From Hyaloraphidium curvatum SAG 235-1 (taxonomy: Eukaryota; Fungi; Monoblepharomycota): a stretch of 64,000 nucleotides of DNA. A program made the position numbers and the translations under genes. This document shows positions 8,764 through 52,632 of the stretch, piece by piece (the first letter of the stretch is position 1; every line of letters starts with the position of its first letter). Location: the NCBI GenBank assembly GCA_025558095.1, contig JAIVFI010000028.1, forward strand, positions 434,001-498,000, in the 5' to 3' direction. The notes below the pieces were generated by a model. That model was given only the letters and a program-made list of their open reading frames with translations, had not been told where the DNA came from and ran no database searches.

Positions 8764-11268
8764 ATGGAGCTGCCGGCGGAGCTTCTCTCCCAGCTGGACT
8801 TTGACCCCGTCGCGCTCCGGAAGAAGTGTGGGTGTTTTCGACCGTCCTCCGGCGACGCCGCTGAACCTCCCGCAGACGACGAGGAGCGCGACAAGCGCCT
8901 GCGTCCCGACGGCAACGAGCAGTGGATCCTGACCGACGGCGATCTCGCAAAGTACCGCGACGACCCGCACACGAAGCCGAAGCCGCGGGCGGCGGTCGAC
9001 GAGGAATGCGAGGTCGCGCTGCTCGGCGGCGGGTTCGGCACCCTCGTGGTCGGGTCCAAGCTCACCAAGGCGGGAGTTACGGGGATCAGGGTCATCGAGG
9101 AGGGCGGCGGCTTCGGCGGGACCTGTGGGTGGAGGCGCAGACCACCACGGATCGTTCTTTTAATCTCCCTCTCTCCGGGGCCTCTCGCTCTCTGTCACTC
9201 GGCGCTTCAAACCTTCACCAGGGTATTGGAACCGCTACCCGAACGCCAAGTGCGACACCGAGAGCTATGTCTGTGGGTGGAACGCCGTCGTTCCTCATTG
9301 TTCCGACAGAATGCGAACTGCCACCTCGGTGTAGACCTGCCCCTGCTTGAAGAGTCCGGCTTCATGCCGTCGACCAAGTACCCCGCGCAGAACGAAATCC
9401 TGGCGCACTGCGAATCGCTCGCTAAGCGGTTCGGCCTCTACGACAACGCCCTTCTTTCGACCCACGTCACCTCTATGGAATGGGACGACGTCGAGAAGCG
9501 CTGGCACATCAGGACCGATCGAGGCGACCACCTTCGCGCCCGCACGGTCGTGGTTTCGGTCGGGAACCTCACCAGGGCCAAGCTCCCGGGGATCGAAGGC
9601 ATCCGCCGCTTCAAGGGGCAGTCGTTCCACACGAGCCGCTGGGACTACTCCATCACCGGCGGGGATTCGACGGGAAACCTCACGAAGCTCAAGGACAAGG
9701 TGGTCGGCATCATCGGGACGGGAGGTAGGCCTTGTCCTGGTGTCTTTTCGGTCCCCATTTGATCCAGAGTCCCAACCAGCCACGGCTATCCAGTGCATCC
9801 CGGCGCTGGGCGAGCACGCCAAGCACCTCTATGTCTTCCAGAGGACGCCGTCGGCCGTCGATAGGCGAGGAGAAAAGAAGACGGATCTGGACTGGTGGAA
9901 AGAGATGACGTCGAAGCCTGGGTGGCAGCGCCGGAGGATCGAGTCGTTCAGCAACGTCACTTCGGGCATCGAGGACGAGGACCTGGTCAACGACGGATGG
10001 GGTGCGGTGATGCGCAAGATGACGACCGTCAAGCAGCGTTTCGCTGGCATGAAGATCAAGGTCGCGGACATGCTGCAGCTGGCGGACATGGAGCACATGA
10101 ACAGCATTCGGAAGCTCGTCGACGAGGTCGTCCAGGACAAAGAGACCGCCGAGAAACTCAAACCCTACTTCGGCTTCTGGTGTGCGTATCGTGCCTATCA
10201 TCTCGGCTCATGTGCAGTCCGATGGTTGAACGGCGTCCGCGAAGACTAGCTGGTTGACCTGTCCCGGCCCTCCTCCAGGCAAGCGGCCCTGCTTCTCCGA
10301 CACGTATTTGCAGACCTTCAACCGCGCAAATGTCACACTCGTGGACACGGACGGCAAGGGCGTTCAGGGCTTGACCGAAGACGGCGTCGTTGCGGTGCGT
10401 GGGTCTATGGACGCGTGCCAACCCGGAACTAAACCGCAATTCCCCCACCTCTCGTATCGACCACAGAACGGAAAGGAGTACAAGGTTGACCTCCTGATCT
10501 TCGCCACCGGCTTCGAGTACGGAGCTATCTCGCCCGGGACCTGGGAGCACCGGCTCGGAATCAAGTGCACAGGACGGAACGGCATCTCTCTCACCCAGAA
10601 GTGGAAGGACGGGGCGTCGACGTTCCACGGCATGACGGTGGGTCAAAATCGGGCGAGATTGGTCTTTCTGTTCTGATGGTCACCTGGAGTTTAGATCAGG
10701 GATTTCCCCTCACTCTTCTTCATGTCCAGCGTACAGTCGGCTCTCCCCTTCAACTGGCATCATCTCCTCTTCGAGCTGTCGGACTACATCGTCTACTGCG
10801 TCAAGCAGTACAAGGAGCGCGGCATACTGTCGATGGAGCCCACCCAGGAGGCCGAGGGTCGCTACACCGACCTGATCGTCAAGCTGGCGTCGCTACGAAG
10901 GTCGTTCTTCGAGGTGGGAACGTGCAGATGTGCGGCTGCCTGCTCCAGTTGACGCATGAGCCCGTTCCGCTCGGACCCTCGTTCGCCCGTTTACCGCACC
11001 CCCGAACACCCCCCGTGCACCTGAAACTGCCCTAATGCAAGTCTTGTATCCCGGGCTACTACAATGTATTTTTTGGTAACGCTGGGCGTTCTCTGGACTG
11101 ACCGGGGCGTCTCCCATGCAGGGCGAGGGTCAGGTCTTCCGTCGGCAGGCGCGTAACCTCCAGTACGGCGCGGGCCAGAATGCCTACTTCTCTCTCATCA
11201 GAAACTGGGCTTTGGAGGACAAGCTCGAGGGGATGGATATCGTGTACGCGCCCAAGGCGTCGCTCTGA
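8764..11268 (+). CDS. Type I Baeyer-Villiger flavin monooxygenase (multi-intron)
   Basis: GGGFG FAD motif, GGTW..NRYP, BVMO fingerprint FKGQSFHTSRWD, GTGATAIQ, FQRTPS, KRPCFSDTYLQTFN, FATGFE and PGYYN. Stop TGA at 11266-11268. Confidence 0.92.
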
Positions 11269-11640
11269 GGGGATGGAGAGGTTGGAGGCTCGGCGGAGCG
11301 TTGGAAATCCTCGAGCAAGCAGGCACAACGCAGTCTTCCGTTGGAAAATGTCACGAGTTGAATCGGATTTTGATGCGAGTCGATGCGATCGAGTGGCGTC
11401 CATCGGGATGTGGCCGCGTCGGACGGGTTCGGTCGGAAGGACACAGCCTCGCGCACGGCTCCGCCACACATCCTCGAAAGTCCGAACGTCTCCCGGAAAT
11501 CCCCCACGCCCCGCTCCCGAAATCGGCATGGCGGTGCACTCAGCAGGAAGAATATATATGGCCGGCCGCCCTACCGGCTCCCCATCGAACTCGACAGCAA
11601 TCAGCATCCACCCGACGCACTGAACCTCCGAACAACGACA

Positions 11641-12595
11641 ATGATTCTCTTCGGCAGCTCTTCCCGCACCGACTCCTCCAACCCGGCCGATGCTAGCGCC
11701 ACCAACCTGCACCCCGCCGCGGCCGCCGTCGACCTGTCCAAGGTCAGCCGCCTCGTGCTCAAGGAGAAGCCGGACTGGACCGAGGCCCGCATCGACGCGG
11801 CCGTGGCCGAGTACCGCCGGTTCGCCACGCTCGCGGCCGCGGGCGTGCCGATGCCGCCCTGCCTCGACGTGGACGAGATCTGGTGCGTCGCCTTGCATCG
11901 ATCTGCCCCGACATTGTCATAACTCCTCCGTTGACAGGCACGCCCACATCCTCCACACGATCGACTACGCCGCCTTCTCCGCGGCCCTCCTCGGCCCCGG
12001 ATCCTTCCTCCACCACATCCCTGCCGACCCCGAGGACACCCCCGCGGAGCAGCGCGAGGCTATGAAGGGCGGCTACGCCGCCGGCCTCGCCGCGTACAGG
12101 GAGCGGTTCGGCGCCGAGCCGCACGCGATCTGGGGCGCCGAGATGCCCGAGGAGGCCGACGCGAACTGCGCTCCGTGCCTGTACAAGGCCGAGGAGAGCG
12201 TCGTGCCAGCGCAGGATAGCCAGGCGGCCTTTTGCTTCCCGCCGCCCTGCTTCTCCAAGGCATCGCTCGCAGAGCCCGCCGAGCGCGGCGGGGCTCTCTG
12301 CCTTCCCATCAGGGCCGCCCCCGGCGGGGCCCTCTGCATCCCCAGGGATGCCGCGCGCGAGGCCTTCTGCATGCCAAAAAACGCTCCCCGCGACGCCTTC
12401 TGCATCCCCAAGACCGCCCCCCGCGACGCCTTCTGCATCCCTAAGGCCGCCTCGCGCGACGCCTTCTGCATCCCGAAGGCCGCCTCGCGCGAGGCCTTCT
12501 GCATGCCGAAAACCGCCCCCCGCGATGCCTTCTGCATCCCAAAGGCCGCTTCCGGCCAGGCCTTCTGCATGAGCATCCACCCGGCACAGGCCTGA
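11641..12595 (+). CDS. GRDP/DUF1399-like His-motif domain fused to Cys-repeat tail, copy 1 (exons 11641-11882, 11938-12595)
   Basis: A phase-2 intron (11883-11937) lies in the Trp codon. Splicing gives VDEIWHAHILHTIDY..FLHHIP, and the tail has 11-aa AFC(I/M)PK repeats. TATA box at ~11552. Confidence 0.9.
12314..12577 (+). repeat. 8 x 33-nt coding tandem repeat (11-aa units such as TAPRDAFCIPK)
   Basis: Units: AAPGGALCIPR, DAAREAFCMPK, NAPRDAFCIPK, TAPRDAFCIPK, AASRDAFCIPK, AASREAFCMPK, TAPRDAFCIPK, AASGQAFCMSI. Confidence 0.95.
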
Positions 12596-23002: not shown

Positions 23003-23927
23003 TCAGGCCTGCACCGCGGGCGCCATGAAGCACAGGGCCTGGTTGCCCCGCGCCGCGGGCGCCGCGAGGCCGTAGCCGCAGAAGGCCTGCCGGGGGGCGC
23101 CCGAAATGCCGAAGCCGCAGAAAGCCTGCTTCGAGTCCGCGGGCTTGGGCTCCCCGCGGCCGGCGGCCCTGATGGGGCTGCAGAGGGCCACGCCGGTCGC
23201 GGCAGCCTGGTTGCTGAACGCAAAACAGGGCACGCATCCGGCCTTTTCGGCCTTGTAGAGACAGAGCGCCTTGCCGGAGTCCGCGGCCTTCGGTTGGAGG
23301 CAGAGCGCCATGCCCGCCTGCTCGGGCTTGGAAACCGAGAAGATGCAGATCGGCGCCCGGCCAGACGGCTCGGAGGGCCCGTCATTGTCCTCGGCCTTGT
23401 AAAGGCAGGGAGCGCACTCGGCGTCGGCCTCCTCGGGCAACTCTCCGCCCCACATGGCATGCGGCTCAGCGCCGAAGCGCTCCCGGTAGGCCGCGAGGCC
23501 GGCGGAGTAGCCATTCTTCATGGCCTCGCGCTGCTCTGCGGGGGTGTCCTCAGGGTCGGCCGGGATGTGGTGGAGGAAGGAGCCGGGCCCGAGGAGGGCG
23601 GCCGAGAAGGCGGCGTAGTCGATCGTGTGCAGGATGTGGGCGTGCCTGTCAAGAAGGAGGTTAGCGGGCAATCGGAGCAGGTCGATGCGAAGAAGCTAAC
23701 CAGATCTCGTCCACGTCGAGGCAGGGCGGCATCGGCACGCCCGCGGCCGCCAGCGTCGCGAACCGGCGGTACTCTGCCACCGCCGCGTCGACCCGCTCTT
23801 CGGTCCACTGCTTCTCCTTGAGCACGCGGCGCCGGACCTTGGACAGGTCGACGGCGGCGGCGGCGGGGTGCAGGCCCGAGGCGGCGAAGGGCGAGGGCTC
23901 GGAGGTGGTGAGGTTGAAGCAGAACAT
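23003..23927 (-). CDS. GRDP-like domain + Cys-motif tail, copy 2 (intron 23646-23700)
   Basis: MFCFNLTT..VDEIW|HAHILHTIDY. Tail motifs: PICIF, ALCLQ, ALCLY, GCVPCF, ALCSP, AFCGFG, AFCGYG, ALCFM. Confidence 0.9.
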
Positions 23928-26584: not shown

Positions 26585-27643
26585 TCATGCCATGATGCCT
26601 GCGAGCACTGCCGCCGCCAGCGCGGCCCATCCCCCCACCGTCGCCCTTCCCGCCCCCGCGGGCCTGGTAGTCACCACCTTCTTCCCCCACAGCTTGGCCA
26701 TCCGCTCCACCAGGAACGCGACGCTCCCGTTGACGTCGTTGTGGATCTCCCTCTCCCGCGGCATCCCCATGGGCACCGAGATGAAGGCGGAATGCACGTC
26801 GCCCCAGACCTTCCTCGACGCATTCTGCGGGATCGCGCCGTCCGGCTGCAAGCAAAGCTGGCTCGCAAGCGGGACCGACCCGTCGTGCACGAGGTAGCCG
26901 GCCCCGCCGAGCGCGTCCCCACCAAGCAGCGCGACGTCCACGCCCTGCAGCACGCCCGCCTGCTTGGCGTTCCACCCTTGCGGGCCGTTCAGGAAGGTGG
27001 TAGTCAGGCTGGCCCCCGCCCCCTCGTCCGGCTGACCCTTCAGGCCAACTGTGAGGTTGAACCCCTGCTCACCCACGAGGGCAACCACCTGTTCGTCGGT
27101 GAGCAGGCCGGCGACCCAATCGTAGGACCAGGAGCCCTGGTGCGGGGTGACGAGGGTGGTTACCGACGCCACGCGGAGGCCGGTGAGGTTGGCCTGCTGC
27201 CCCGATATGATGTCGGCCGCGGCGGCCCGCACAACCAGGCCCCCGTAGGAATAGCCGACCAAGTCGAACGTGTCCTTGCCGTGGTTGTCCCTCAGATAAC
27301 CCAGGAACCGCGCCAGCGTCGCACCGGCCTCGTCGACACCGGCCACGGAGTTGACCTCGAGGCTCTCCCCCAACGCCACGCAGTCCGCCGCCGGCACGGG
27401 GGCTGTCGAGTTCCTCCCCTTCCGCGCGGGGGCGACATAAGCACCCAGGCCCGCCCGGGCCAAGCTGGAGCGGATCGTGTCGAAGGACGAGGAGCTGCAG
27501 GAGGTCGGGGTCGAGAAGGCGTGGCTGCCGGCCCCGCCGCCGACGAGCACGATGGCGCGGCGGGAGGTGTCGGGCGCCGCGGCGGCGAGGGCTGCCAGAA
27601 AGAGGAGGAGGAAAGCGGGCAGCTGCAGAGCCCGCGGAGGCAT
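26585..27643 (-). CDS. Secreted alpha/beta-hydrolase (lipase-like) with C-terminal hydrophobic/GPI-like tail
   Basis: Signal peptide, nucleophile elbow LVGYSYGG, TLVTPHQGS, HDGSVPLAS and a late His (DVHS). Confidence 0.85.
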   Translation of the reverse strand: MPPRALQLPAFLLLFLAALAAAAPDTSRRAIVLVGGGAGSHAFSTPTSCSSSSFDTIRSSLARAGLGAYVAPARKGRNSTAPVPAADCVALGESLEVNSVAGVDEAGATLARFLGYLRDNHGKDTFDLVGYSYGGLVVRAAAADIISGQQANLTGLRVASVTTLVTPHQGSWSYDWVAGLLTDEQVVALVGEQGFNLTVGLKGQPDEGAGASLTTTFLNGPQGWNAKQAGVLQGVDVALLGGDALGGAGYLVHDGSVPLASQLCLQPDGAIPQNASRKVWGDVHSAFISVPMGMPREREIHNDVNGSVAFLVERMAKLWGKKVVTTRPAGAGRATVGGWAALAAAVLAGIMA

Positions 27644-28105
27644 AGTGGAGGTCGAGTTTGTGGAGGAGTGAGGGACGTGAGAGGGATCTCGAAGGGATGG
27701 AGATGCCGCCGTGGCCGTTCCCAAAGCCCTCAAAGCAGTTCGGCTCAAATTCGGTCAATGGCGTCGACAATGTCAGCCGGGCATTCCTCTGCAACGCAAC
27801 GGCGTGGTGATCCCCCCCGGATGTCCATTCGCGTTGGCTCCGCCGGACTGAGTCTGCTCCGAGCCTGCTCTCGTCCAGCCCAGCGCCCTCTGAAAGCCGT
27901 CTCTACCGGTCTGCCCAGTCAAAGATGACCTGGCTACCTCTGCTATTTCAGATGAACCATTTCGGCCCCTGGAATAGATCAGTGGGCAACTTAGGCCAAG
28001 ATCACCTGCGTGGCTGACCCTTAGATCGAAACTCTGCTCTTCCGCCGCGCTTGTGCCGAAACGGTCTTGGCGCCAGTGCTCGCGTAGGCTTGGAGCACGG
28101 ACGGC

Positions 28106-29611
28106 ATGTCGCCACGGGAAGTTGCCCCGGAGGCAACGGCTCTGTCGCCGGAGGAATGGCTGGTCCTGTTCCCCGCCGGGATGTCTCCCTCCCCCTCGCG
28201 CCCGGTTGCGGAGCCGCCGCCCGACCCTGCTGCCGCCCGGCGCGCCGAGGATCCGCTCACGCTGGCAGCCGCCCGTGAAGCTTTTGCCTCCGCCGGCTTG
28301 CGGTGGACAGCCCGCCTGGTGCGCTTCCACGAGCGGCTGCCGTGGGTGAGGAGCTTCACCTGGTTCTTCTACCTCGTGGCCTTGGGAATCGCACCTGCCC
28401 TGGCCTGGACCGGGCTGCACGCGACAGAGAGTCCTTATGCGAGCCAGGCCACCGTTGCCGGACTTGCCGTTGCGCTGCTGGTGGCTTGGGAGAGCATGGT
28501 CTGCTTGTGTTGGGACTACTTGGCGAAGAACGGCCTGAGAAGGCCGAAACCTTTCCGTCCGTATGACAAGCTGGCTCTAGCGAGTGCGGTGAGGTGGCTG
28601 CAGCTTCGCAGCGACGTTAGCGGCAAGGCCGGGGAGTCGTCGGAAACGCCGGTTTCTGTGCTGCTGCTGCACGACGACGCCGACGCCATGTGTTCGTGCC
28701 CGCGTGGGCAGTGCGGGGGTGGACAGCTGAGGCGGGATGCCTACATCCGTTTCTTTGACTTCTGGGCCGATGTGCTCCGCACCGCCGTGGTCACTCTTCT
28801 TTTGCTTTGGACTCCCATGGTCTCCCTTGCGGGCAAAGGTTTCTGGCACTCCTGGGGCGTGACTGGTGCCATTTTTGCTCTTATCTGGACGACCCTCTTT
28901 TATCCTCTGATGGTTTCCGTGCGCGAGTACACCGTCCACACAGAAGCCAGCGCCAACATCGTGCGGAGGAATCTCCACAGGGCGCTCTCCGCATCCTTGC
29001 GCTCCTTCTTGCGGCGCTACAGGGAGTTTCTCTCGAAGTATTTGGGGGAGAATCCCGCAACAGCATCCTCGGTCGAACTGCACGCGCGCATCCTCGCCCT
29101 GCTCGAGTATGCATGGGCCTCCCAGCTGGGTTACCTGCCCCTCTACCGCCGACTCTTGGTCACATGCATCATCGCCAACCTGGTCGCCTTTATCGTGAAC
29201 CTGGCGGTCGGCCCGTGTATCACGGCATTCCAGATCGCGGACGTCGCCGGCATCATCTTCGTGGTCGCGCGGGAGCTCCTCATCACCGCGGCATATAACT
29301 CCCAGGTCGAGGATGTAGCGTCGCTGTGCGCCTCTGCCGCCGCCGCCGCCCGCAGCCTCCTCACCGAGCACGCCGGCGGCTCCCCCGACCCGCAGGCATT
29401 CGCCGCGCTCCGGGCGCACGAGCATCTCCTCGCCGGCGCCGCGGCGTCGGCGCTGGAGCGCCGCGTCAGGTTCCTAGGGCAGCCGATCGGGTTCGGGACC
29501 GCGAGGGGGCTGGCCATTACGGGGATCACGATCATATTCGCGGCGGTGGGAGCGATGAGGGGGTTCGGGGTGCGCGTGGTGCTCGGGACCGTCTGCACGC
29601 CGGGTCAGTAG
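28106..29611 (+). CDS. Multi-pass membrane protein, possible 7TMIC/gustatory-receptor-like (DUF3537-like); paralog A
   Basis: About 7 hydrophobic segments, a Cys loop HDDADAMCSCPRGQC, and C-terminal RFLGQPIGFGTARGLAITGITIIF. Paralog at 33342. Confidence 0.75.
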   Translation: MSPREVAPEATALSPEEWLVLFPAGMSPSPSRPVAEPPPDPAAARRAEDPLTLAAAREAFASAGLRWTARLVRFHERLPWVRSFTWFFYLVALGIAPALAWTGLHATESPYASQATVAGLAVALLVAWESMVCLCWDYLAKNGLRRPKPFRPYDKLALASAVRWLQLRSDVSGKAGESSETPVSVLLLHDDADAMCSCPRGQCGGGQLRRDAYIRFFDFWADVLRTAVVTLLLLWTPMVSLAGKGFWHSWGVTGAIFALIWTTLFYPLMVSVREYTVHTEASANIVRRNLHRALSASLRSFLRRYREFLSKYLGENPATASSVELHARILALLEYAWASQLGYLPLYRRLLVTCIIANLVAFIVNLAVGPCITAFQIADVAGIIFVVARELLITAAYNSQVEDVASLCASAAAAARSLLTEHAGGSPDPQAFAALRAHEHLLAGAAASALERRVRFLGQPIGFGTARGLAITGITIIFAAVGAMRGFGVRVVLGTVCTPGQ

Positions 29612-29992: not shown

Positions 29993-30702
29993 ATGATGGC
30001 CACCATTTCCGCCGACTTCACCATCTCCGGCCTCCACCCCGCCGCGGCCGCCGTCGACCTCGCCAAGGTCCGCCGCCGCGTTCTCAAAGAGAAGCCGGAT
30101 TGGACCGAAGCCCGTGCCGACACCGCCGTCACCGAGTACCGCCGGTTCGCGACACTCGCGGCCGCGGGCGTGCCGATGCCGCCCTGCCGCGACGTGGACG
30201 AGATCTGGTGCGTTGCATCGCAGCACTTGGCATTCGATCGCTCCTCACCTCGAAGTGTGACAGGCACGCCCACATCCTCCACACGATCGACTACGCCGCC
30301 TTCTCGGCCGCCCTCCTCGGCCCCGGCTCCTTCCTGCACCACGTCCCGGCCGACCCGGAGGACACCCGTGCGGAGCAGCGCGAGGCCATGAAGAGCGGCT
30401 ACGCCGCCGGGCTCGCGGCGTACAAAGAGCGGTTCGGCAGCGAGCCGCACGCCATGTGGGGCGGGGAGCTGCCCGAGGAGGCCGACGCCGAGTGCGCGCC
30501 GTGCCTTTACAAGGCCGACGATTGCAAGGCCGATGATGAGGGTGCCACGGATGATAACCGCTGGCGATGCCTGGTCTGCGTCGCCAAACCCGCCAACCGG
30601 TCAGAGCCGGCTTTCTGTGGCTACAGGGCCCTGGATGCCGTCCCCACGGGGAAGCAGGGCGGTGCGGGAAAGGCGGCCGTTGCCAGGGTTCAGCAGGCCT
30701 GA
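29993..30702 (+). CDS. GRDP-like domain + short Cys tail, copy 3 (intron 30208-30263)
   Basis: Same domain and intron position as the other copies. Tail CAPC..DDC..WRCLVC..AFCGY. TATAAA at ~29905. Confidence 0.9.
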
Positions 30703-31008
30703 ACTTTGATGTAGTGCATTCACATTTCTGTCTCGTTGTCGAATCATCCATTCACGCCCAACATCGAAGGCCCATGGATGATTTAGCTTCGTGAGCGGCA
30801 AGAAGGACAGCAATCGGTCTGACACTGGTCACATTGGTCCAGTGAAGATGAGTCTTTCATCCTGTGCATCGGACAAGCAGCTGTAAGTCCGCATGGCATG
30901 GTTGGGCGAGCGCTTTTGTGGGACAGACAGGACAGGCGATGACCAGCGATGACCCGCCCGCACATTTCATCGTTCGGAAAGCTCCACGCGCTTTACCCAC
31001 CCGGAGAA

Positions 31009-31967
31009 ATGCCGTCGTTCGACGCGCTGACCGCCATCTCCCTCGAATCGCGCACCGACGCTGGCGCCGCGTTCCTCGCCTCCGTCGACCCCGCGTGGGC
31101 GCGCGGGCCGGGGCTCCCCGCGGCGGGGTCCCTCGCGAACGCGCTGCTCATCCGCGCCGCGTGCGAGACCCTCGGCCCGTCGTACCGGCCCGTCTCGCTG
31201 CTCGTGGACTACCTGGCGCCGATGCGGCTCGGGGCTCGGGTGCGCATCGCTGTGGAGGTCGCCAGGAAGGGGGCGACGATGGCGCATCTGAGCGCGAGGA
31301 TCAGCCCGGCGGAGGGCGGGGCGCCGCTCGTCCTCGCGCTCGCCGTGTTCGGCCGCGACTCGGCCAGCGCCGCCGAGATGGAGCGCGCGCAGCGCAGCCT
31401 GTATCGGGCACCGGCCGTCCCTCCGCCCCCCGACGCGGGCGGCTTCCACAGCGGGGCCGAGGGACAGTACCGCAGCATGTTCCGGACCGTCGAATGCGAG
31501 CCGGACGCGTCGATGCTGGATTCCCAGGGCCACCTCGTGCCCGGACCCGCGGCTTACTGGGTCAGATGGGGCCTGGACGAGAGCCCCGTGTCCTGGCCGA
31601 TGTTGGCGCTCATGGCGGACTTTGTGATGCCCACGCCGAAGCAAGTGGAGGAGTATTACATCGTCGGCGGCAACGGAGCAGGGGCCAAGCTGACTCCCGG
31701 TATGTCGATGCCTTGTTGATGGACCTTGTTGTGAACTGGTATCCGACTCGGCATCATTCAACAGCAACGGCCTCGTCTTCCGTGAACTTCATCCGACTGC
31801 CGAAAGGACCGTGGTTGCGCAGCTCGTACAACGTCGCGCTCAGGTCGTCGGATGTGATCCTCGAGTTCATGTGCGTGATGGTCGAGTTCCTGCCGGTGGC
31901 GATCACTGATGCCGACCGGCCTCCTTCACCAGCTGGTGGGACGAGCAAGGCGGTCCACCATGCGTGA
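31009..31967 (+). CDS. Double hotdog-fold thioesterase family protein (one intron ~31700-31764)
   Basis: VDPAWARG..AAGSLA..., PVSLLVDYLAP, VARKGATMAH, LALMADF, STAT..SVNF and GPWLR. Confidence 0.75.
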
Positions 31968-33134: not shown

Positions 33135-33341
33135 AGGCATCGTGGACCGATCCCGTTCTTTGAGCCATGTACGGCGATTTGCATGCTGGTGCTATGCAGT
33201 CTGGAGAGGGCTCGATCTGCGGCACGGCACCACGGACGACCCGGTTTAGGATGACCAGCCTTGGGGCTCGGACGCCCCGCGATCGCAGTGCAGTGTTTGC
33301 GCGTGTCCCCCACGACCACTCACCGAATATCTCGAGCCAAG

Positions 33342-34925
33342 ATGCCGCCGTCGAACGAAGACGACGCAGAAAAGGCGACCTTTGCGCCGGAGGGCGCCAC
33401 AGGGGCAGCGGACTTCCCCATTTCCGCCGCCGAGTACCTCGCGGCCGTCCCGCATTTTCCCGCGCTGCCGCCGTCGCTGAGGGGCGCCGCGCCGCCCGCC
33501 GACCGCGCCGCGGAACTGCGCGACGCGCGCCCGCTGGACAGCCGCGCGCTCCTCGACGGCCTGTCCGCCGCGCCGGCGCTGCGCTGGATCACCGTCGCGC
33601 AGCTCCGCGTGGCCCCGTTCGCCGCCCTCGCGCGCGAGCGCACCGTGGCATTCATCGCCACCGGGATCGTGGTCAACTCTCTCCCGTGGGCATTCGGGAG
33701 GGACCGCTTCGGCACCAAGCAGCTGGCGGTGGGCTACGCGACGTGGATCGCGCTCTGGCTGTGCCTGGGGATCGTGAACCCGCTGACGGCCGGGTTCCGG
33801 CGGGGCCTGGGGCTGAAGGGGCAATCGTCGGCCTCGAGGCCGAGCCTGGACGCCTCGCCGCTGGCGGGGTTGGTGCGTTGGAATCAACTCGTTGCCGACG
33901 GCGGCACCTCCCGACTCCTCCGGCACGACCCCGACGACAAGCTTTGCCCGTGCGCGCTCCCCGGTTGTTCCGGAGGCCTGTTGCGCGAGATAACGATCCT
34001 CCGGCTGCTGGAGTTTGCGTTCAAACTGACAACCGTACTGACGGTCTTCTTGTGCGGTTTCTGGACGCCCACCGTGACCCTGGCATCCGTCGTTTGGACT
34101 TCGCCGTGGGCCGCCACACTCGCTGCTCTCAATAGTGAGTTTCCCTACCCCTCGCGCTAGTCAGCCGCCTAACGATCCGGGAAGCATTTGTCCTGCTAGC
34201 GTACTCGTTTCCAAACGCCCTCTGCCGGTTCACAGGCAACGTCGGCATCTTCCGCCTCTCCGAGCGCGTATCTCACCGCGCGATGAAGCTGGCCCTCGAG
34301 GACCTGCTCCACCGGCTCTCGTCCGGCGCCGCGAATCCCTCAACCCCGATCTCGGACGAGCCCCACGCGCAGCTCCACGCGGTGTTCACCGCCGCGTGGC
34401 GCACCAGGGTCTCTGCTTTCCACACCTCCGGTAGCGTGCTGTTTGCGGCTGCAATCTGCGTGGTCATGGCCGGGATCAACATGGTGCGCGGCTTCCGCTC
34501 CCTCATCGGATCCTAACTGACACGTCCCTGTTTTCCAGATAAGTGGCTCCTGCGTGCCCTCGTTCTACATCGCCTACCTCCTCTACGTCCTCCTCTCCCT
34601 CTCCCTCTTCGACCTCCTCTCCCTCGCCGCCTCCAACGCCCAGGTGACCTCCCTCGTGGACCTGTACCTCGACGCGCGCCGCGAGATCCGCGAGCTCCCC
34701 CTCCCCGCCTCCCCCGCCCTCGCCGCGGACCTGCGGCGGCACGACGCCGCGCTGTCTTCGTACGCGGACGCGGCGCGGAGCAGGGGGCGGTTCCTCGGGT
34801 TCGCGGTGGACTACGGGGTGGTGAGGACGGTGTATGCCACGGCGCTGACGCTGGCGGTGGGGATTTGGAGCGTGCTGAGGGGGTTGGGGGTGGTGGCGAC
34901 GATGGACATCGCGTGCGGGGGGTGA
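33342..34925 (+). CDS. Multi-pass membrane protein, possible 7TMIC/DUF3537-like; paralog B (2 introns)
   Basis: HDPDDKLCPCALPGCSGG, FWTP, LAASNAQVTSL and RFLGFAVDYGVVRTVYATALTLAVGIWSVLRGLGV. Colinear with paralog A. Confidence 0.75.
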
Positions 34926-35285: not shown

Positions 35286-36193
35286 ATGTTCTGCTTCAAC
35301 CTCACCACCTCCGAGCCCTCGCCCTTCGCCGCCTCGGGCCTGCACCCTGCCGCCGCCGCCGTCGACCTGTCCAAGGTCCGGCGCCGCGTGCTCAAGGAGA
35401 AGCAGTGGACCGAAGAGCGGGTCGACGCGGCGGTGGCCGAGTACCGCCGTTTTGCGACGCTGGCGGCCGCGGGCGTGCCGATGCCGCCCTGCCTCGACGT
35501 GGACGAGATCTGGTGAGCTTCTTCTCATTTTCCTGCTCCTACTTCCTGCTAACCTCTCGCGGTGACAGGCACGCCCACATCCTGCACACGATCGACTACG
35601 CCGCCTTCTCGGCCGCCCTCCTCGGCCCCGGCTCCTTCCTCCACCACATCCCGGCCGACCCTGAGGACACCCCCGTGGAACAGCGCGAGGCGATGAAGAG
35701 CGGCTACTCTGCTGGTCTCACGGCCTACCGGGAGCGCTTCGGCGCCGAGCCGCACGCCATGTGGGGCGGAGAGTTGCCTGCGGAGGCGGACGCCGAGTGC
35801 GCGCCATGCCTTTACAAGGCCGAGGACAATGATGAGCCAGCCGAGCCGTCTAGCCCGGCGCCGATCTGCATCTTCTCGGTTTCCAAGCCCGAGCAGGCGG
35901 GCCAGGCGCTCTGCATCCAGCCCAAGGCCGCGGACTCCGGCAAGGCGTTCCGTCTCTACAAGGCCGAAAAGGCCGGATGCGTGCCCTGTTTCGCGTTCCG
36001 CGAGGAGGCCAAGACGGCGGACTCGAATCAGGCCTTCTGCGGCTTCGGCATTGCCGGCGCCCCCCGGCAGGCCTTCTGCGGGTACGGCATCGCCGGCGCC
36101 CCCCGGCAGGCTTTCTGCGGCTACGGCCTGGCGGCGCCCGCGGCGCGGAGCAACCAGGCCCTGTGCTTCATGGCGCGCGAGGTGCAGGCGTGA
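35286..36193 (+). CDS. GRDP-like domain + Cys-motif tail, copy 4 (intron 35513-35568)
   Basis: Same domain. Tail PICIF, ALCIQ, AFRLY, GCVPCF, AFCGFG, AFCGYG x2, ALCFM. Confidence 0.9.
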
Positions 36194-38483: not shown

Positions 38484-39364
38484 TCACACGGAAACCTGGG
38501 GAGCCTGCCAGCAGAAGGCCTGCTTCGAGTTCGCGGGCTTCTGGGAGACTGTATGGAAGCACAGGGCCTGCGCAGGGGCGTTGATGCAAAGGGCTGCTCC
38601 GCGAGCCTCGCGGGAAGAGGCATTGAAGCACAAGGCCTGCGCGGGCGCGTTGATGCAGAGGGCTCCCCCGCGGGAGGTAGCCATGGCGTCGCTGCCGGCG
38701 GCCTTGTTGTAGATGCAGAGGGCCGCAGGGGCGGTCGTCCAGTTGACGCAGCGCGCCATGCCCGCGTCCTTGCCGGCCGCGTTGATGCAGAGAGCCCTTC
38801 CGGACGGCTCGGCGGGCGCTGCACCGTCCTCGGCCTTGTAGAGGCAGGGAGCACACTCGGCGTCCGCCTCCGCGGGCAACTCTCCGCCCCACATGGCGTG
38901 CGGCTCGGCGCCGAACCGCTCCCGGTAGGCCGTGAGGCCGGCGGAGTAGCCGTTCTTCATGGCCTCGCGCTGCTCTGCGGGGGTGTCCTCGGGGTCGGCG
39001 GGAACGTGGTGAAGGAAGGAACCGGGCCCGAGGAGGGCGGCGGAGAAGGTGGAGTAGTCGATCGTGTGCAGGATGTGGGCGTGCCTGTCACCGCGAGAGG
39101 TTAGCAGGCATAAGGAGCAGGTCAGTGAGAAGAAGCTCACCAGATCTCGTCCACGTCGAGGCACGGCGGCATCGGAACTCCCGCGGCCGCTAGCGTGGCG
39201 AACCGGCGGTACTCGGCCACGGCCGCGTCGACGCGCTCTTCGGTCCAGTGCTTCTCCTTGAGCACGCGGCGCCGGACCTTGGCGAGGTCAACGGCGGCGG
39301 CGGCGGGGTGCAGGCCGGAGGCGGACATGTCGGCGGAGTCGTAGGCGTAGGCGAAGCAGAGCAT
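38484..39364 (-). CDS. GRDP-like domain + Cys-motif tail, copy 5 (intron 39085-39140)
   Basis: MLCFAY..VDEIW|HAHILHT. Tail ALCIN, ARCVN, ALCIY, ALCIN, ALCFN, ALCIN, ALCFH, AFCWQ. Confidence 0.9.
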
Positions 39365-44230: not shown

Positions 44231-45155
44231 TCATGCCTGCACCGCGGGTGCCATGAAGCACAGGGCCTGGTTGCTCCGCGCCGCGGGCGCCGCCAGGCCG
44301 TAGCCGCAGAAGGCCTGCCGGGGGGCGCCGGCAATGCCGAAGCCGCAGAAGGCCTGCTTCGAGTCCGCCGTCTTGGCCTCCTCGCGGTTGACACCCCTGA
44401 TGGGGCTGCAGAGGGCCTCGCCGGTCGCGGCAGCCTGCTTGCTGAAAGCAAAACAGGGCACGCATCCGGCTTTTTCGGCCCTGTAGAGACAGAACGCCTT
44501 GCCGGAGTCCGCGGCCTTGGGCTGGATGCAGAGCGCCTGGCCCGCCTGCTCGGGCTTGGAAACCGAGAAGATGCAGATCGGCGCCGGGCTAGACGGCTCG
44601 GCTGGCTCATCATTGTCCTCGGCCTTGTAAAGGCATGGCGCGCACTCGGCGTCCGCCTCCGCAGGCAACTCTCCGCCCCACATGGCGTGCGGCTCGGCGC
44701 CGAAGCGCTCCCGGTAGGCCGTGAGACCAGCAGAGTAGCCGCTCTTCATCGCCTCGCGCTGCTCCACGGGGGTGTCCTCAGGGTCGGCCGGGATGTGGTG
44801 GAGGAAGGAGCCGGGGCCGAGGAGGGCGGCCGAGAAGGCGGCGTAGTCGATCGTGTGCAGGATGTGGGCGTGCCTATCAAGAAGGAGGTTAGCGGGCAAT
44901 CGGAGCAGGTCGATGCGAAGAAGCTAACCAGATCTCGTCAACGTCGAGGCAGGGCGGCATCGGCACGCCCGCGGCCGCCAGCGTCGCAAAACGGCGGTAC
45001 TCGGCCACGGCCGCGTCGACCCGCTCTTCGGTCCATTGCTTCTCCTTGAGCACGCGGCGCCGGACCTTGGACAGGTCAACGGCGGCGGCGGCGGGGTGCA
45101 GGCCGGAGGCGGCGATGGGCGAGGGCTCGGAGGTGGTGAGGTTGAAGCAGAACAT
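44231..45155 (-). CDS. GRDP-like domain + Cys-motif tail, copy 6 (intron 44874-44928)
   Basis: Same domain. Tail PICIF, ALCIQ, AFCLY, GCVPCF, ALCSP, AFCGFG, AFCGYG, ALCFM. Confidence 0.9.
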
Positions 45156-46860: not shown

Positions 46861-49800
46861 CTAGCGAGGATCGCCCTTCCGCCGCCTGGAGCGAGAGTCA
46901 GTTCGCCGTCGGCGAGCAAACCCACAGCACACTCACCGGTAGACGAACACGGCCGTCGTAAAGACGTTGAACACCGTGAAGGCGAGGAGGATACCGTAGT
47001 TGCGCCACGTGTTGCCGGAACTCCAGCTCAGCTGCAGCTCCAGGTAGGCGTCGCCCGTGGCGACGGGGCAGTACAGGCAGCCCGAGGTCGCCGAGGGGTT
47101 TTCCAGGTAGCCCGGGGCCGTGGGCAGGAACCCGGCGGACCATTGCCCGCAAGTCAGCCCTGGCGGGGGGTTGTAGCTCACGAACTCGTTGGGAGCACAG
47201 GTGACAATGAGGCCGCCGAGCTGGGAGCCCAAAGCACCCTCCAAATAGTAGTGGTAAACGCTTTGCGGGATATCAGGGCGATGTAGAAGGAGGCAGGGCG
47301 TGATGAACGCACCTCAACCAGTAGATCCAACTAGACCAGAACACGGGCTGAAGAGGACATGTGTGACCAACAAACAATGATACTAAGCGAAAAAGGACGC
47401 ACCATGGCCGAGACAGGGATGGTGATACCGGCAAACAAGCTCATAATGGATGTGACGATCGGGTTGATAATGGCTGCAGGGGTTGTCCAGCCTCGTCAGC
47501 TCGACATCAAGAGGGAGGAGCGCCTTACCCACCGGCCACCTTGATGTTCGGCGAGAACGCAGCGATGCTCTGACCGAGAGTGACGCAGAAGAACGTGAAG
47601 GTGATGTAGAGGAGGAAGAAATAGGCGGCTTGGCCACCCAGAGGAAGTCCGACCTGAGGCATTTGCCCGTTAGGCCAAGCAAGAATTAGAGAGGAAGGAT
47701 CACGAACCAAGAAGTAGAACGGGATGTAGAAGCAGACGGCCGAAAGGAAAGCGAACGGAAGCTCCGCGGCCAGGATGGCGATGAAGAAGCTCCTCCAGCT
47801 GTAGAACCCGCTACCGACCTCGCGGTTGAACCACTTGCGCTCCTCGATGAGACTGGGCTGCACCTGACTGATGACGAGGGCTCCAAGCGTGCAGGTCTGG
47901 AAGAGCGCAAACATGCGGTTCTGCAGGCCAGCGTAGGTGTCGGGCACCCGGAAGAAGGTCAGGCCCAGGATGAGGCCGGTGGCGAACTGCATGACGGCGC
48001 GTCCGACGTTGTAGTTTGGTTGGCGCTGCGAATGCCCGAGTGGGTCAGCCAGAGCCCGAGCCCGTCGTCGAAGGCCACCCACGTAGTAGTTCACCAGCAT
48101 GCGCTCCGTAACTATGGCCGTTTCCTTGGGGTTCCGGCTGCCGTCCGTGACGTGTCCCGCGGCCTTCATCGTGCCGTCGTTGCCCGAGCGCAGCTTCTCG
48201 ATCTCAGCCTCGATCACACCCTTCTCCGGCGCCGCGTTCCAGGCGTCGACCCACTCGTCCTGCCCCTTCATCTTCGGAGACGCCGAGCCCTCGCGCCCGT
48301 TGATGGCGTCCAGGATGTACTCGGCCGGGTTGCCCTGCTCGTCCAGCTTCGGGCAGCCGTAGCGCTCAAAGTAGGAGAGCAGCGTGTTCGAGTGGTCGCC
48401 AATCGCGCCGAAGTAGATCGTCCGGCCGCCGCGACCGAGGAGGAGCAGGTCGTCGAAATACTCGAAGAGGACGGCAGAAGGCTGGTGGACTGGAGAGCAA
48501 AATGGTCAGCAACGCAATCGGCATAGGCAAGCAATTGACGCACTTGTGCAGATGACGGCCTGACCGCGCTTTGTCAGCTTCTTGATCAGGCGGACGATGG
48601 AGTAGGACGCGGTGGAATCCAAGCCGGACGTCGGCTCTGCAGGGAGAAGAATTCAGATTGAGGCGCAGCCACGAACAGAGAGGAGCCCACCATCGAGGAA
48701 AAGGATCTCGGGCTTCGCCACCAGCTCGACCGCGATGGTGAGCCTCTTCCGCTCCTCGACCGAAATGCCCAGGCCCGACTCGGTGGTCCCGATCATGGCG
48801 TCGCCGATGCTGCGCATTTCGAGGAGGTCGATCACCTCCTCGACCCACTTGAGCTTCTCCGCCTTGCTGATCTCGGGCGGCTGCCGCAGCTCCGCCGAAA
48901 ACACCAGCGCCTCGCGAACCGTCTGTGTCGGCATGTGCACGTCCATCTGCTCCGCGTAGCCCGTGATCTGCTTGAAGTCGGGGCCCTGCGGCGACGAGCC
49001 GAGGTAGACCTCGCCTTCGACCTTGCCAATTGTCTTGCGCTGCGCCAGCACGTCCAGGAGCGTGGTCTTGCCAGCACCGGAGCTGCCCATCAGGGCGACC
49101 ATCCTGCCGGGAACGACGTAGCCGGCCACGTTCTGCAGGAGCTGGCGCTGCCCTTTCTGCACGGGGACGAAGTAGTTGAGGTGCATCCAGGTAAAGGGCC
49201 GGCCGTGGAACATCTGGACGTCCTCGTCGGCGGCGGCGGCCTGCACGCCCTTGCCGTCGACCTGGACGACGGTGGCGGCCGGTGTGGGCACGACAGCGGC
49301 CTTCTTCTTGCGCAGCTTCTGCTTCTTGTAGACGTTGACCGAGATGCCGCCCTTGCCGTACTCGATGAGCTCGGTGCCGAGCATGGCCAGGAAGGTGAAA
49401 CCGATGAAGAAGACTGGGCGGGCGGTGAGCTTCGCTGGGCAGCGCAGGGACAAGCGGGACCTACCGGCGAGGGCCAAGACGTTGATCCACAGGTGCCCCA
49501 TGTCGCCGAACCGCGCGTTGAGGTAGTCCTGCCCCGACACGTAGTCCTGGCCCGGCACGGCGCCCGGGATGGTGCACGTCTGGTACGCGAGCGAGGCGTT
49601 CGGGTACGGGGGGATGAGCGTCGACCCGGAACAGTAGAAGTTCTGCCCGACGAATTCGTTGAGCGCCAGCGCCTTGTACCCGTAGGCCAGCGGGTTGACC
49701 CAGACGATCCACCCGAACCAGGGCGGCATCTGGTTGAACGGGATCAGATACCCGTTGTAGACGAGGAACAGGATCATGATAATGCCGGCGGCGCGGTTGG

Positions 49801-52218
49801 CGCTGTTGAGGTCCACGGAGTAGGTGCCCATCATGCGGCAGAAGGCCGCGAACGAGACGTAGGACAGGAACAGCACGAAGTAGAAGATGCCAAAGTGCAC
49901 GCCGCGGTCCGTCATGTTGAGGCCGACCATGAAGTAGAAGATGACGGTGAAGAAGAGGATCTGGACCAGCTTGATCGGGATGTCCCAGACGACCTTGGCG
50001 AAGTAGTAGATCATGGGCTGGTACAGCACGAAGCTCTTGTGCTTGTAGAGCACCTGGCGGCCGTCCATGGTCCCGGGGATCTCGGACTGCGCGGCCAGCG
50101 AGTTGAACAGGAGGGCAAAGAAGAGGACACCGCCGCGGGAGAAGGCGCCCGTGCCGGTGAAAGGCAGCTGGAAGTAGACCGAACCGACTGGTAGGAACCG
50201 TCCGTTAGTGGGAAACAGCGGACGCCCCGGCGAACCCACCGATGATGGCCATCATGGTGTTGAACACCGTCCTGAAAATCACCTCCTGCTTCCCTCCCCA
50301 CAGCAGCTGCCCCTCGCGGATGAGGCAAGCGACGAGCTGCTCCCCGTAGGTGGTCGAGTAGGTGCTCGCGACCTTGGTCTTGCCGCTCGTCTCCTTGTAG
50401 ACCCCGTACGCCTCGTCGAACTCCTTTGCCGCCGCCGCCCCCGCGGCGTCGTGCTCCGACATCTCGGACATCATCGCCGCGCACTCGGGCGACGCCAGCC
50501 AGCGGGCCTCGAACTCGGCGGGGGTCTTGGGCACCGAGCCCTCCATCCCCGGCCGGATGACCTGCTCCGCGGGGACCGTGACCCCCGTGAGGAAGTCGGG
50601 GGTGGTGGCCCGCGGCGGGCAGACGAAGCCCATGCGCTCGAAGTAGGCCTTGGCCTCCTCGGTGGGGCCGCAGTAGATGCAGCGGCCGCCGGCGATGAGG
50701 ATGACGCGGTGGAACTTTTCGTACACGGCCTCCGAGGCCTGGTAGAGCGAGGCGAAGATGGTCTTGCCGAGGTAGTCGCACGACAGCCGGAGCGCCGAGA
50801 CGAAGTCGAGCGCCGAGGCCGAGTCGAGGCCCTTGGTCGAGCCGTCGTAGAAGCCGATGGTGGAGCCCACGAGGAACTGCTCGGCGATGGAGACTCGCTT
50901 GCGCTCGCCGCCCGAGACGCCGCGCACGTAGGCGTTGCCGACGATGGTGTTGGCGGCCTTGGTGAGGCCGAGGACACGCATGACGATGTCGACGATGCGG
51001 CGGCGCACGTCGGCCGTCGTGGCGTTGTCCGTGTACGGGACACCCGACTCGCCGACTTTAATGGAAGGGGGAATCGTCAGTTGAGGAGAAGAGAAAGGCA
51101 CGCCAACGTCAACCCACTCCGACACCGAAGAGCAAAGTCAAGCGTCTGCCTGACTGTCAGCGTCGCGTAGTGGTAATCGTCCTCGCCCGAGTAGCTCAGC
51201 TGCCCCTTGTACTTGTGAAGGAAGTCCTTGAGCTCCACGCCGGCGATCTTGATCTCGCCCGTGACCGACTTGAAGAACTTGTGCTGCCCGGCCAGCGCGC
51301 GCAGGAAGGTGGAGCAGCCCGAGCCGGGCTTGCCGAGGACCAGGGCCATCTCCTGCGCGCCAACGAAGCCGGTGAAGTTCTGCAGGAGTGGCCCGGGCGG
51401 GGGGCCCTCGGGCGGTTTGAGGGCCTGGGCGATCTTGTAGCACGAGAACATGGCCTAAACGCGGGGGGAGACCGGAGATAAGCAATTCGGTGTGAAAGAC
51501 GTCGCAAATTAGTGGAACCCACATTGACGACGGTGCTGATCTCGCGCCCGCTGAGGTCGATCCCCTGGACGGCCAGCCCCTTCCAGACCACGCCGCCGCG
51601 CCGCTGCGCGTCCGTCAGCCCCACGGCCGACATGCGCTCCCTGCGCATCTGGGCCATCTTGCCCAACACGTACTCGAAGTCGAAGGCGGGGTCGGCGGGG
51701 TCGAGCCGCGCGTCGGCGTCGCCGGCGGTGCGCTCGGCCAGGGCCAGGATGTCTGCGTACGACGGGTTGCGCGAGGCGATCGCCTTCATCGAGTTGTCCT
51801 GCTGCGAGGCGAGGCCCACGGCCTGCATGGCCAGGTCGGTCAGGCCCTCGGCCACGCCCGGGGTCGGCTCGAAGTTGACGACGGTCTTCCGCCGGGTGAG
51901 CGTCTTCGCGGCGTCGGTCGGAGCCGCGGAAATTGTCGACGGGTTTGTGGCGGCGGTCGACGCGGCCTGGGCCACGGGAGGGGGCAGAGGCGTCGCGGGG
52001 GAGACGAGCCCGGAGGACGCGCCGTTGGCCAGGCCCGCCGCGGCAGCCGTCTCGGCCGGCGCCGTCGCGGCAGCCGCCGCCACGGAGGTCGCCGGCGCGG
52101 TGACGGCGCGCATCTCGATGGGCTCCGCGGCCGACCCCGCGACGACCACGCCGGGCACCCAGTCCCCCGTCGACTCGTCCCACACCTTCGGCCCCGCGTC
52201 CGCGTCTGGCTCCGCCAT
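46861..52218 (-). CDS. Pleiotropic drug resistance (PDR, ABCG full-size) transporter, multi-intron
   Basis: NBD1 LGKPGSGCSTFL and VSGGERKRVSIAE. NBD2 MGSSGAGKTTLL, SVEERKRLTIAVEL and LFLD|EPTSGLDS. Two TMDs with PDR extracellular Cys loops. Confidence 0.96.
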
Positions 52219-52632
52219 CGCCCGCGGTGCGAAGGAAATTTCGCGTCCGGCTGGGAACGCCGCAGGCAGACGGACTGCTCGCGAGTGGAAGCGGGAAGTG
52301 AAGCCCTGCTGTCCCCGAGGCCGCCCGCAGCCGCAGTCAACGACATCCCTGAACCCTCGGCCACGCGACTTTAGGCCGTGGACAGCCACCAGCGCATCAG
52401 AATGACAGACAACGGATCGACAATCCTAAAGCAGCCCAGCTCCGGAGTGTCTTTCGCCCACATGTTATCTCCGCCCCCCCCCATTTCGCCGCTGTCACCC
52501 CGGTGGCCGCACCTCGAGCTCCGGCCCGAAACGCCCGAGAAAATCCACGCCCACCATCCAGCCAGCACATTTGATGCAGACCGAAAGTCGTCTGGCGCGT
52601 TCTGGGCTCCGCCTATCACCTATCTCCCCTCA

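Follow-up and report, generated by a model that had tools for sequence, protein, structure and literature searches.

We analyzed a gene of the early-diverging fungus Hyaloraphidium curvatum whose 3' end carries a tandem array of short cysteine-containing units, together with the paralogs and relatives of its product. The gene, here termed copy 1, lies in a 64,000-nucleotide stretch of contig JAIVFI010000028.1 (positions 434,001 to 498,000, forward strand; hereafter the window, to whose first letter all coordinates refer). GC content across the window ranges from 57-72% and introns are short and of the GT..AG type. Copy 1 (11641-12595, +) is a two-exon gene, and its product is identical to P0001, a public 299-amino acid protein of H. 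curvatum. Exon 1 (11641-11882, +) runs from Met1 into the Trp81 codon, of which it holds the first two bases, and is followed by a 55-nt GT..AG intron (11883-11937, +) and by exon 2 (11938-12595, +), which ends in the stop codon at 12593-12595. Searches with copy 1 were run exon by exon, and the spliced sequence was taken from P0001, which equals both exon translations with Trp81 across the junction.

Transcription was read from RNA contigs of one public run (X1), which is listed only as guessed RNA; its contigs skip GT..AG introns as RNA would. A contig joint at 11881>11937 skips the 55 bases of the copy 1 intron and a contig at 11937-13418 spans exon 2, indicating that copy 1 is transcribed and spliced as modelled. 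The 5' end of an RNA contig at 11595, beyond which sequencing-adapter letters begin, is located ~40 nt downstream of a TATA-like element recognized by sequence reading (11552-11559, +), suggesting a transcript start near 11595. A promoter of ~240 nt with this TATA-like element (11404-11640 in copy 1) was duplicated along with each gene copy and retains 80-94% identity. In the 3' part of the flavin-monooxygenase-like gene that lies upstream (8749 to ~11270), RNA contigs also skip two GT..AG introns, at 10911-11040 (128 nt) and 11065-11122 (56 nt).

The product has two parts. Residues 21-166 (11701-12193, +, interrupted by the intron) form a helical domain of the UCP032817-like (PF27765)/GRDP-like type with conserved His, and a CxxC motif (C-A-P-C, 12167-12178, +) that is kept in all six window copies comes directly after the domain. 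Residues 167-299 (12194-12592, +) make up a disordered tail with recurring Cys motifs. P0001 contains 13 Cys from residue 143 on (8.3%), 11 of which are past residue 166. Neither a signal peptide nor a membrane segment was found in P0001, the maximal hydropathy of its first 30 residues being 0.9 versus ~3.0 in signal-bearing relatives, and the protein is therefore probably cytosolic.

The repeat array of copy 1

The array occupies 12314-12577 (+) and consists of eight 33-nt units in the frame of exon 2. Tandem Repeats Finder reported a repeat at 12315-12570 with a period of 33, 7.8 copies, 80% matches and a score of 260, and thus both the program and our reading of the frame bear out the eight in-phase units of the original prediction, which had been made from the DNA letters alone. 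The unit consensus (n = 8) is x-A-x-x-x-A-[F/L]-C-[I/M]-P-[K/R]. Ala6 and Cys8 are present in 8/8 units, as is Ala at position 2, a regularity absent from the earlier description. Position 7 is Phe in seven units and Leu in one, position 9 is Ile in 5/8 and Met in 3/8, and P-[K/R] follows in 7/8 units, with S-I in its place in the last. The alignment of units accordingly agrees with the predicted pattern of an A-F/L-C-I/M core kept in every unit and P-K/R in seven of eight. A ninth, offset unit ending in GGALCLPIR (12281-12313, +) is one residue out of register with the eight, and an additional AAFC lies upstream of the array (~12224-12235, +).

Codon usage differs along the unit. The A-F-C codons are uniform wherever the residue is present (GCC 8/8, TTC 7/7, TGC 8/8), and these G/C-ending codons sit in open reading frames with 80-90% GC at third codon positions. 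Synonymous changes are local: all four Pro codons are used among the seven units with Pro, Lys is encoded by AAA or AAG, and the codons of Ala2, Ser3 and Asp5 also vary. Thus, the statement that synonymous positions differ between units stands for Pro, Lys and some Ala, Ser and Asp codons and fails for A-F-C. The pairwise ratio of non-synonymous to synonymous differences between units (pN/pS) was 0.87 in columns 1-5 and 0.40 in columns 6-11, or 0.20 when the degenerate last unit was left out; since the units of copy 1 are recent duplicates of each other, these ratios are indicative and do not constitute a formal test. The difference between columns shows that variation is not evenly spread along the unit, the outcome expected if the peptide motif were under selection.

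We looked for KR and RR dibasic sites in the copy 1 tail and found none; the sole RR of the protein is inside the domain. This agrees with the view that the array is unlike Kex2-processed dikaritins. The string C-x-P-x-R, which in sulfatases is targeted by formylglycine-generating enzyme, occurs once per copy as C-L-P-I-R in copy 1 (12299-12313, where the offset ninth unit holds the only such string) and as C-S-P-I-R in copies 2 and 6. With a single site per copy and no sulfatase domain, this is probably a coincidence.

Paralogs and the tail motif

Six gene copies were found within the window by tblastn, and the genome holds two more on another contig (C46), for a total of eight. Besides copy 1, the window holds copy 2 (23003-23927, -; intron 23646-23700), copy 3 (P0005; 29993-30702, +; intron 30208-30263), which has a short tail, copy 4 (P0003; 35286-36193, +; intron 35513-35568), which has 13-residue Q-A-F-C-G-Y/F-G units, copy 5 (P0004; 38484-39364, -; intron 39085-39140), which has A-L-C-I/F-N units, and copy 6 (P0002; 44231-45155, -; intron 44874-44928). 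All six window copies have an intron of 55-56 nt at the same position and in the same phase. The duplicated DNA blocks contain only the ~240 nt promoter, the coding sequence and a short 3' untranslated region, and neighbouring genes are outside the blocks.

Among copies, the ratio of non-synonymous to synonymous substitution rates (dN/dS) is 0.06-0.19 in the exon-2 part of the domain (residues 82-166), which indicates strong purifying selection. The tails have a dN/dS of ~0.5-0.9 (~0.5 between close copies), and those of distant copies are essentially unalignable. Alignment of near-identical copies reveals gain or loss of whole tail units. The C-terminal sequences are ..HPAQA, ..VQA or ..VSV; they contain no CAAX box, and the last Cys precedes the end by 8-10 residues. 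At the opposite end, the first three residues are M-F-C or M-L-C in copies 2, 4, 5 and 6 (23919-23927, 35286-35294, 39356-39364 and 45147-45155, respectively).

Despite differing flanks, the eight tails share a Cys context. The motif A-[LFIWM]-C (A-Phi-C below) holds 52 of the 76 tail Cys, compared to 2.7 +/- 1.6 in composition shuffles (maximum 12 in 10,000), an enrichment of ~20-fold. The profile of these sites is [A]-[A/D]-[S/G/P]-[G/R/K]-[Q/A/D/E]-A-[L/F]-C-hydrophobic, with Ala at -2 in 46/46 distinct sites. In Hyaloraphidium tails an A-Phi-C Cys recurs every 9-24 residues, the spacing in the copy 1 array being 11. The surrounding residues vary by copy: R-D/E-A-F-C-I/M-P-K in copy 1, R-Q-A-F-C-G-Y/F-G in copies 2, 4 and 6, A-L-C-I/F-N-A in copy 5, and A-L-C-L-K-P-P-A and Q-A-L-C-A-S-V-G in the C46 copies. 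A-P-R-D-A-F-C of copy 1 corresponds to A-P-R-Q-A-F-C of copy 4. As read from these sequences, the conserved element of the paralog tails is R/G-D/E/Q-A-Phi-C, N-terminal of the Cys, and the Pro-Lys junction is specific to copy 1. This leaves unsupported the suggestion that the recurring Pro-Lys/Arg-Ala junction is a release site for ~11-mer products, as the junction is peculiar to copy 1 and the residues that paralogs share are N-terminal of the Cys.

A-Phi-C also occurs in P0012 of the jakobid Andalucia godoyi (5/5 Cys, with A-A-L-C-F in four repeats) and in the metagenome proteins P0107 (8/9 Cys) and P0009. A second motif, A-G-C-V-P-C-F, is common to copies 2, 4 and 6 and to the metagenome proteins P0006, P0009 and P0079. 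Given this recurrence, the tail vocabulary is, at least in part, common to proteins well outside Hyaloraphidium. Together with the pN/pS contrast, the enrichment across eight tails and the recurrence in homologs support the original proposal of selection on the peptide motif and not on the DNA repeat. One homolog, P0006, has two A-L-C-A-I-V-G motifs ahead of its domain.

The conserved domain

P0001-P0005 carry a precomputed Pfam assignment to UCP032817-like (PF27765, as PF27765.1). An Atlas feature search also puts the P0001 domain among PF27765 clusters, and PF27765 and GRDP-like are co-assigned in Atlas clusters. The GRDP-like/DUF1399 profile (PF07173) scored 17.2 bits on P0001, below its gathering threshold of 22.7, and the match was confined to the profile's C-terminal third; P0001 is related to GRDP-like/DUF1399 but is not a scoring member. 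Pfam and NCBIfam returned no significant family for the separate exon products because the domain signature spans the intron. The NCBIfam scan of both exon products yielded neither TIGR04222 nor any other match, no methyltransferase family matched the copy 1 products, and a word-based protein search with exon 2 returned only Hyaloraphidium paralogs.

A phmmer search with residues 21-168 of P0001 retrieved 3699 cluster representatives (50% identity) at E <= 0.001. In an alignment of 60 sequences, Y58, D78, W81, H82, H84, Y91 and H107 are invariant and E57, L86, T88, G102, H106, P109, Y134, F138 and W146 near-invariant. The conserved core D-x-D-E-x-W-H-x-H-x-L-x-T-x-x-Y ... F-x-H-H-x-P is present in P0001.

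AlphaFold2 predicts an all-helical domain for P0001, with a block-mean predicted local distance difference test score (pLDDT) of 85-97 over residues 21-150 and <50 over residues 167-274. Copy 3 is likewise predicted to consist of a confident domain and a disordered tail (<50). Against two UCP032817-like Atlas models, the P0001 domain gave target-normalised template modelling (TM) scores of 0.75 and 0.67 over 142 residues, and its fold also matches GRDP-like Atlas models. No relatives in the PDB were found by sequence profile or by Foldseek at E <= 0.001, and the best hit of an exhaustive VIA structural search (Z 3.8) is noise for a helical domain. A literature search (DUF1399, PF27765, UCP032817, GRDP1 with copper) returned no functional data for the family.

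Tails and fusions in relatives

The tails of relatives were examined in the best 150 of the 3699 phmmer matches. Here the stretch after the domain is commonly 7-30% Cys, versus about 1-2% in the domain, and the Cys-rich tails are often tandem repeats with sequences unrelated to one another. Some family members do not have any Cys tail. Named sources of the family include the jakobid A. godoyi, the amoeba Arcella, Picozoa, the fungus Allomyces, bacteria and DPANN archaea.

Two architectures bear on function. In P0052, P0123 and P0160-P0162, the domain and a Cys-rich linker are fused to a Ctr copper transporter (PF04145, E 9e-29). These five divergent proteins come from metagenomes or metatranscriptomes, are ~50% identical to each other, and one has a signal peptide. 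No other architecture of the family points directly to a function. The long bacterial members P0146, P0153, P0124 and P0126 combine the domain with a membrane domain of the TIGR04222 ('near_uncomplex') type and with a Gly/Cys C-terminus. According to a 2025 survey (PMC12452194), TIGR04222 proteins that end in this way are putative MNIO substrates; the known products of MNIO enzymes are copper chelators. The survey also suggests a possible part for the N-terminal moiety of TIGR04222 proteins in biogenesis and reports that one third of genomes with TIGR04222 do not have an MNIO.

Other relatives are built differently. In the secreted members P0120, P0092 and P0089, the tail is built of as many as ~ten repeats that read A-G-C-G-N-C-H-G-K or P-S-G-S-C-S-T-G-K-K. 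C-x-x-C-H is the heme c attachment motif, but its sites in the secreted members lie too close together for a multihaem cytochrome. P0013 of the early-diverging fungus Allomyces javanicus (948 amino acids) has a different architecture again, with three domain copies and a SUMO-like Rad60-SLD.

We found no recurrent gene neighbour of the family, and no shared maturase, in 16 prokaryotic loci and six single contexts. An AhpC/Redoxin gene is located beside a UCP032817-like gene in two independent bacterial contexts, one of them on two contigs (L018 4220-4750, where Fe superoxide dismutase and NifU genes are also near; L046 3946-4464; L047 3760-4278). With so few occurrences, we do not regard AhpC/Redoxin as a partner.

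Genomic surroundings

The window also encodes F-box proteins, tRNase Z, a flavin monooxygenase, a BTB-like protein, a glyoxalase/VOC protein, an alpha/beta hydrolase, an acyl-CoA thioesterase, kinases, a UvrD helicase, a PDR ABC transporter and a GNAT protein. The C46 locus encodes glycosyltransferases, a short-chain dehydrogenase/reductase and a kinase, so that only kinases are common to the two loci. No UstYa, MNIO, P450, methyltransferase, macrocyclase or prolyl oligopeptidase (POP) genes were found in the window or at the C46 locus, and none of the encoded proteins is similar to a known enzyme of peptide tailoring. UstYa (DUF3328) had no match in the window open reading frames or in the genome, the genome search having been run without a positive control. 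No match to MNIO (PF05114) was found in the genome; the positive control was found in Caulobacter. A single weak POP-like match in the genome (32.5 bits) is on another contig.

Several neighbours lie close to the paralogs. Two multi-pass membrane proteins without a Pfam family are encoded directly upstream of copies 3 and 4 (28088-29608, + and 33255-34922, +, respectively), outside the duplicated block; they are distant paralogs of each other, 35% identical over 100 amino acids, and one contains a C-S-C-P-R-G-Q-C loop. The PDR-type ABC transporter (47528-52425, -) is full-size, with ABC_trans_N, two ABC2_membrane and PDR_CDR domains, and is ~2.4 kb from copy 6. The alpha/beta hydrolase (26588-27754, -) has weak DUF676 and palmitoyl-thioesterase-like matches, and the acyl-CoA thioesterase is at 30943-31716 (+); their presence among Cys-tail genes is a faint hint of thioester chemistry. 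A 203-bp tandem repeat of two copies with 78% identity in a lower-GC stretch (61154-61572) is unrelated to the array.

Discussion

The array encodes the C-terminal disordered tail of an expressed, probably cytosolic two-part protein. The tail displays about a dozen thiols, each within [R/G]-[D/E/Q]-A-[F/L]-C-hydrophobic, and the 33-nt units are tandem duplications of this motif, with selection keeping the motif as the spacers drift. In our favoured reading, we propose that the protein works uncut, as a multivalent thiol array tethered to a conserved-His domain (D78, H82, H84, H107, the near-invariant H106, Y58 and Y91). Its most likely job would be to bind, buffer or pass on a soft metal, for which copper is the best candidate, or to carry out closely related thiol chemistry. 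Capacity would be raised by the duplication of units inside genes and by the eight gene copies, in the manner of amplified metallothionein genes. The clues to copper or thiol chemistry are the Ctr fusions, the association with TIGR04222 and MNIO, and the C-x-x-C-H and metallothionein-like tails of relatives. We place the probability that an intact protein with a thiol-motif array serves soft-metal or thiol chemistry at roughly 45%. The version specific to copper is a tentative proposal and, on balance, doubtful. That the protein is uncleaved, that its Cys bind metal, that the metal is copper and that the conserved His and Asp form a metal site are steps that we infer.

Several observations weigh against this reading. 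With one Cys per 11 residues (8%) and hydrophobic flanks, copy 1 is far from the CxC/CxxC density of metallothionein-like proteins. The link to copper, as we draw it, is made through fusions in other organisms and a paper on a partner domain. There is no copper gene or metal-responsive element in the window, and the five Ctr loci of the genome are elsewhere. The AlphaFold2 models of copies 1 and 3 have no confident docking of the tail on the domain, and since the domain is without a solved relative, a His metal site is proposed from conservation. Lastly, the specificity of A-Phi-C suggests recognition by a protein, for example an enzyme, over plain metal ligation.

Low Cys density and a specific motif fit recognition by a protein at least as well as plain metal ligation, and a self-contained modification of Cys thus keeps some probability, although we regard it as unlikely. 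Here the domain would be an enzyme, or the dock for one, that alters the A-Phi-C Cys of its own protein to heterocycles, cross-links or persulfides, giving a protein-borne cofactor or chelator. The specific Cys motif occurs in proteins whose sole other common part is the domain, the invariant D/H/Y set resembles an active or metal site, and the family genes stand alone without partners. The suggestion that the N-terminal moiety of TIGR04222 proteins may join in biogenesis fits as well, as do the third of TIGR04222 genomes that have no MNIO (PMC12452194) and the lack of an MNIO match in Hyaloraphidium. On the other hand, the domain resembles no known enzyme in fold or sequence, AlphaFold2 does not dock the tail, and some members have no Cys tail to modify. 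A wider form, in which domain and tail are a self-contained system that converts or excises its own tail Cys to yield a protein-borne or released copper-chelating or redox-active peptide, is in our judgment quite unlikely. The original prediction instead had short peptides released from the array. In such a multi-core precursor, akin to those of peptides made on ribosomes and modified after translation (RiPPs), the domain would be a large leader or recognition part and the tail the source of Cys peptides of ~7-13 residues, linear or cyclised, released by cleavage that may occur after Pro (through POP) or after Lys/Arg. The expanded gene family with conserved 'leader' parts and divergent repeated tails has this appearance, and in copy 1 the in-phase units keep Pro-Lys as the third base of the Pro codon varies. 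Word depth in the transcript contigs is high, although it gauges transcript level poorly; a PDR-type ABC transporter is encoded nearby, the genome has one POP-like gene, and the bacterial TIGR04222 relatives have been discussed as RiPP-like substrates (PMC12452194). Release of ~11-mers is nonetheless an improbable account. A signal peptide and tail dibasic sites are both absent, no tailoring genes were found at either locus, and the POP match is weak and unlinked. Paralogs share A-Phi-C but not the putative cleavage junction, the duplicated blocks comprise promoter, coding sequence and untranslated region and no cluster, and prokaryotic members have no common maturase neighbour among the 16 loci. 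In the Ctr-fused relatives the Cys-rich stretch is internal and so cannot be a released product there.

Two further explanations were considered. Multiple S-acylation, in which Cys with hydrophobic and basic flanks are palmitoylated to form a reversible membrane tether, would explain the context of hydrophobic-Cys-hydrophobic followed by Lys/Arg and could involve the M-F-C or M-L-C starts of four copies and the hydrolase and acyl-CoA thioesterase of the window. The matches of these thioesterases are weak or generic, the invariant Ala at -2 is not needed for acylation, and prokaryotic, secreted and Ctr-fused members, in which palmitoylation is unexpected, also carry Cys tails; we consider this explanation very unlikely. 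The array could also be a largely neutral low-complexity expansion, with slippage amplifying a Cys-bearing unit and only the domain functional. A tail dN/dS near 0.5-0.9, the gain and loss of whole units between near-identical copies and the identical A-F-C codons across units with these residues are what such an expansion would leave. It would not account for a motif ~20-fold over shuffles in eight tails with differing flanks and shared with homologs from other sources, for Pro that is kept as its third codon position varies, or for Cys-rich tails across the family, and we hold it to be highly improbable. An Erv/ALR sulfhydryl oxidase, which also combines a helical domain with a shuttle-Cys tail, was considered and offers an analogy only, there being no fold match. 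The heme regulatory CP motif, lipobox, CAAX, lanthipeptide Ser/Thr-Cys pairing and sulfatase CxPxR each fit few units at most, and thus none explains the array.

Comparison with known systems places the thiol-array protein near several classes. UCP032817-like and GRDP-like proteins have the same N-terminal domain, by sequence and predicted fold, followed by a low-complexity Cys- or Gly-rich tail. Unlike those of UCP032817-like relatives, the Hyaloraphidium tail is a single-Cys A-Phi-C array and not G/S/C low complexity or CxxC clusters, and the Hyaloraphidium copies have neither a membrane domain nor a signal peptide, unlike the bacterial UCP032817-like proteins with TIGR04222 in the case of the membrane domain. 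Metallothioneins are, like the P0001 tail, thiol-rich, disordered, repeat-built and gene-amplified, and soft-metal binding is plausible here. The yeast metallothionein CUP1 is tandemly amplified, and Cys make up roughly 20-30% of metallothioneins. The P0001 tail differs in having 8.3% Cys, no CxC clusters in its units and an attached large folded domain. In MNIO-modified copper-binding RiPPs and putative protein substrates of MNIO (methanobactins, bufferins and TIGR04222 proteins; PMC12452194), a Cys C-terminus follows a conserved N-terminal part as it does in P0001, for which relatives also suggest a link to copper. P0001 differs in that no MNIO was found in the genome and that a DUF2063 or PME partner and a signal peptide are absent.

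In fungal RiPP precursors (PMC9233826, PMC7329392), as in copy 1, tandem short peptide units are encoded in one precursor-like gene. Borosins also have a folded domain upstream of a candidate core, but P0001 has no fused S-adenosylmethionine-dependent alpha-N-methyltransferase. Amatoxins share with copy 1 a Pro beside a Cys-containing unit; in contrast to the ~35-residue MSDIN precursor, P0001 is a 299-residue protein with a folded domain, without a short leader or linked POP(B). Dikaritins and other Kex2-processed repeat proteins differ from P0001, which has neither a signal peptide nor KR/RR between cores and for which no UstYa was found. The h-type pheromone precursor HPP1 of Trichoderma reesei contains several copies of a short Cys motif in one fungal precursor (PMC3068285). 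HPP1 is a 5 kDa protein with a C-terminal CAAX and Kex2 sites, whereas P0001 has no CAAX or Kex2 site and a folded domain of 145 residues.

The domain family itself is already catalogued, and low-complexity Cys tails are implicit in the name of TIGR04222 and in the 2025 survey (PMC12452194). We found no prior description of the A-Phi-C array as a conserved motif, of its eightfold amplification in an early-diverging fungus, or of the Ctr fusions as a lead. Were the tail merely low-complexity sequence on a housekeeping domain, the finding would be an ordinary one. If domain and tail were instead a self-contained system, they would represent a new class of ribosomal peptide modification, with the enzyme in cis, that occurs across bacteria, archaea and eukaryotes and does not depend on MNIO. 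PF27765/GRDP-like spans bacteria, DPANN archaea, protists, fungi, plants and animals, and the Hyaloraphidium locus shows what selection keeps beside the domain, namely A-Phi-C, amplified inside genes and over eight copies. The Ctr fusions, the TIGR04222 architecture and the rule of Cys-rich tails lead to the testable hypothesis that the family handles copper- or thiol-dependent chemistry. If confirmed, this would give a role to a widespread uncharacterised domain, including that of the plant GRDP stress proteins, and could bring to light a novel type of metal buffer or of Cys modification in eukaryotes.

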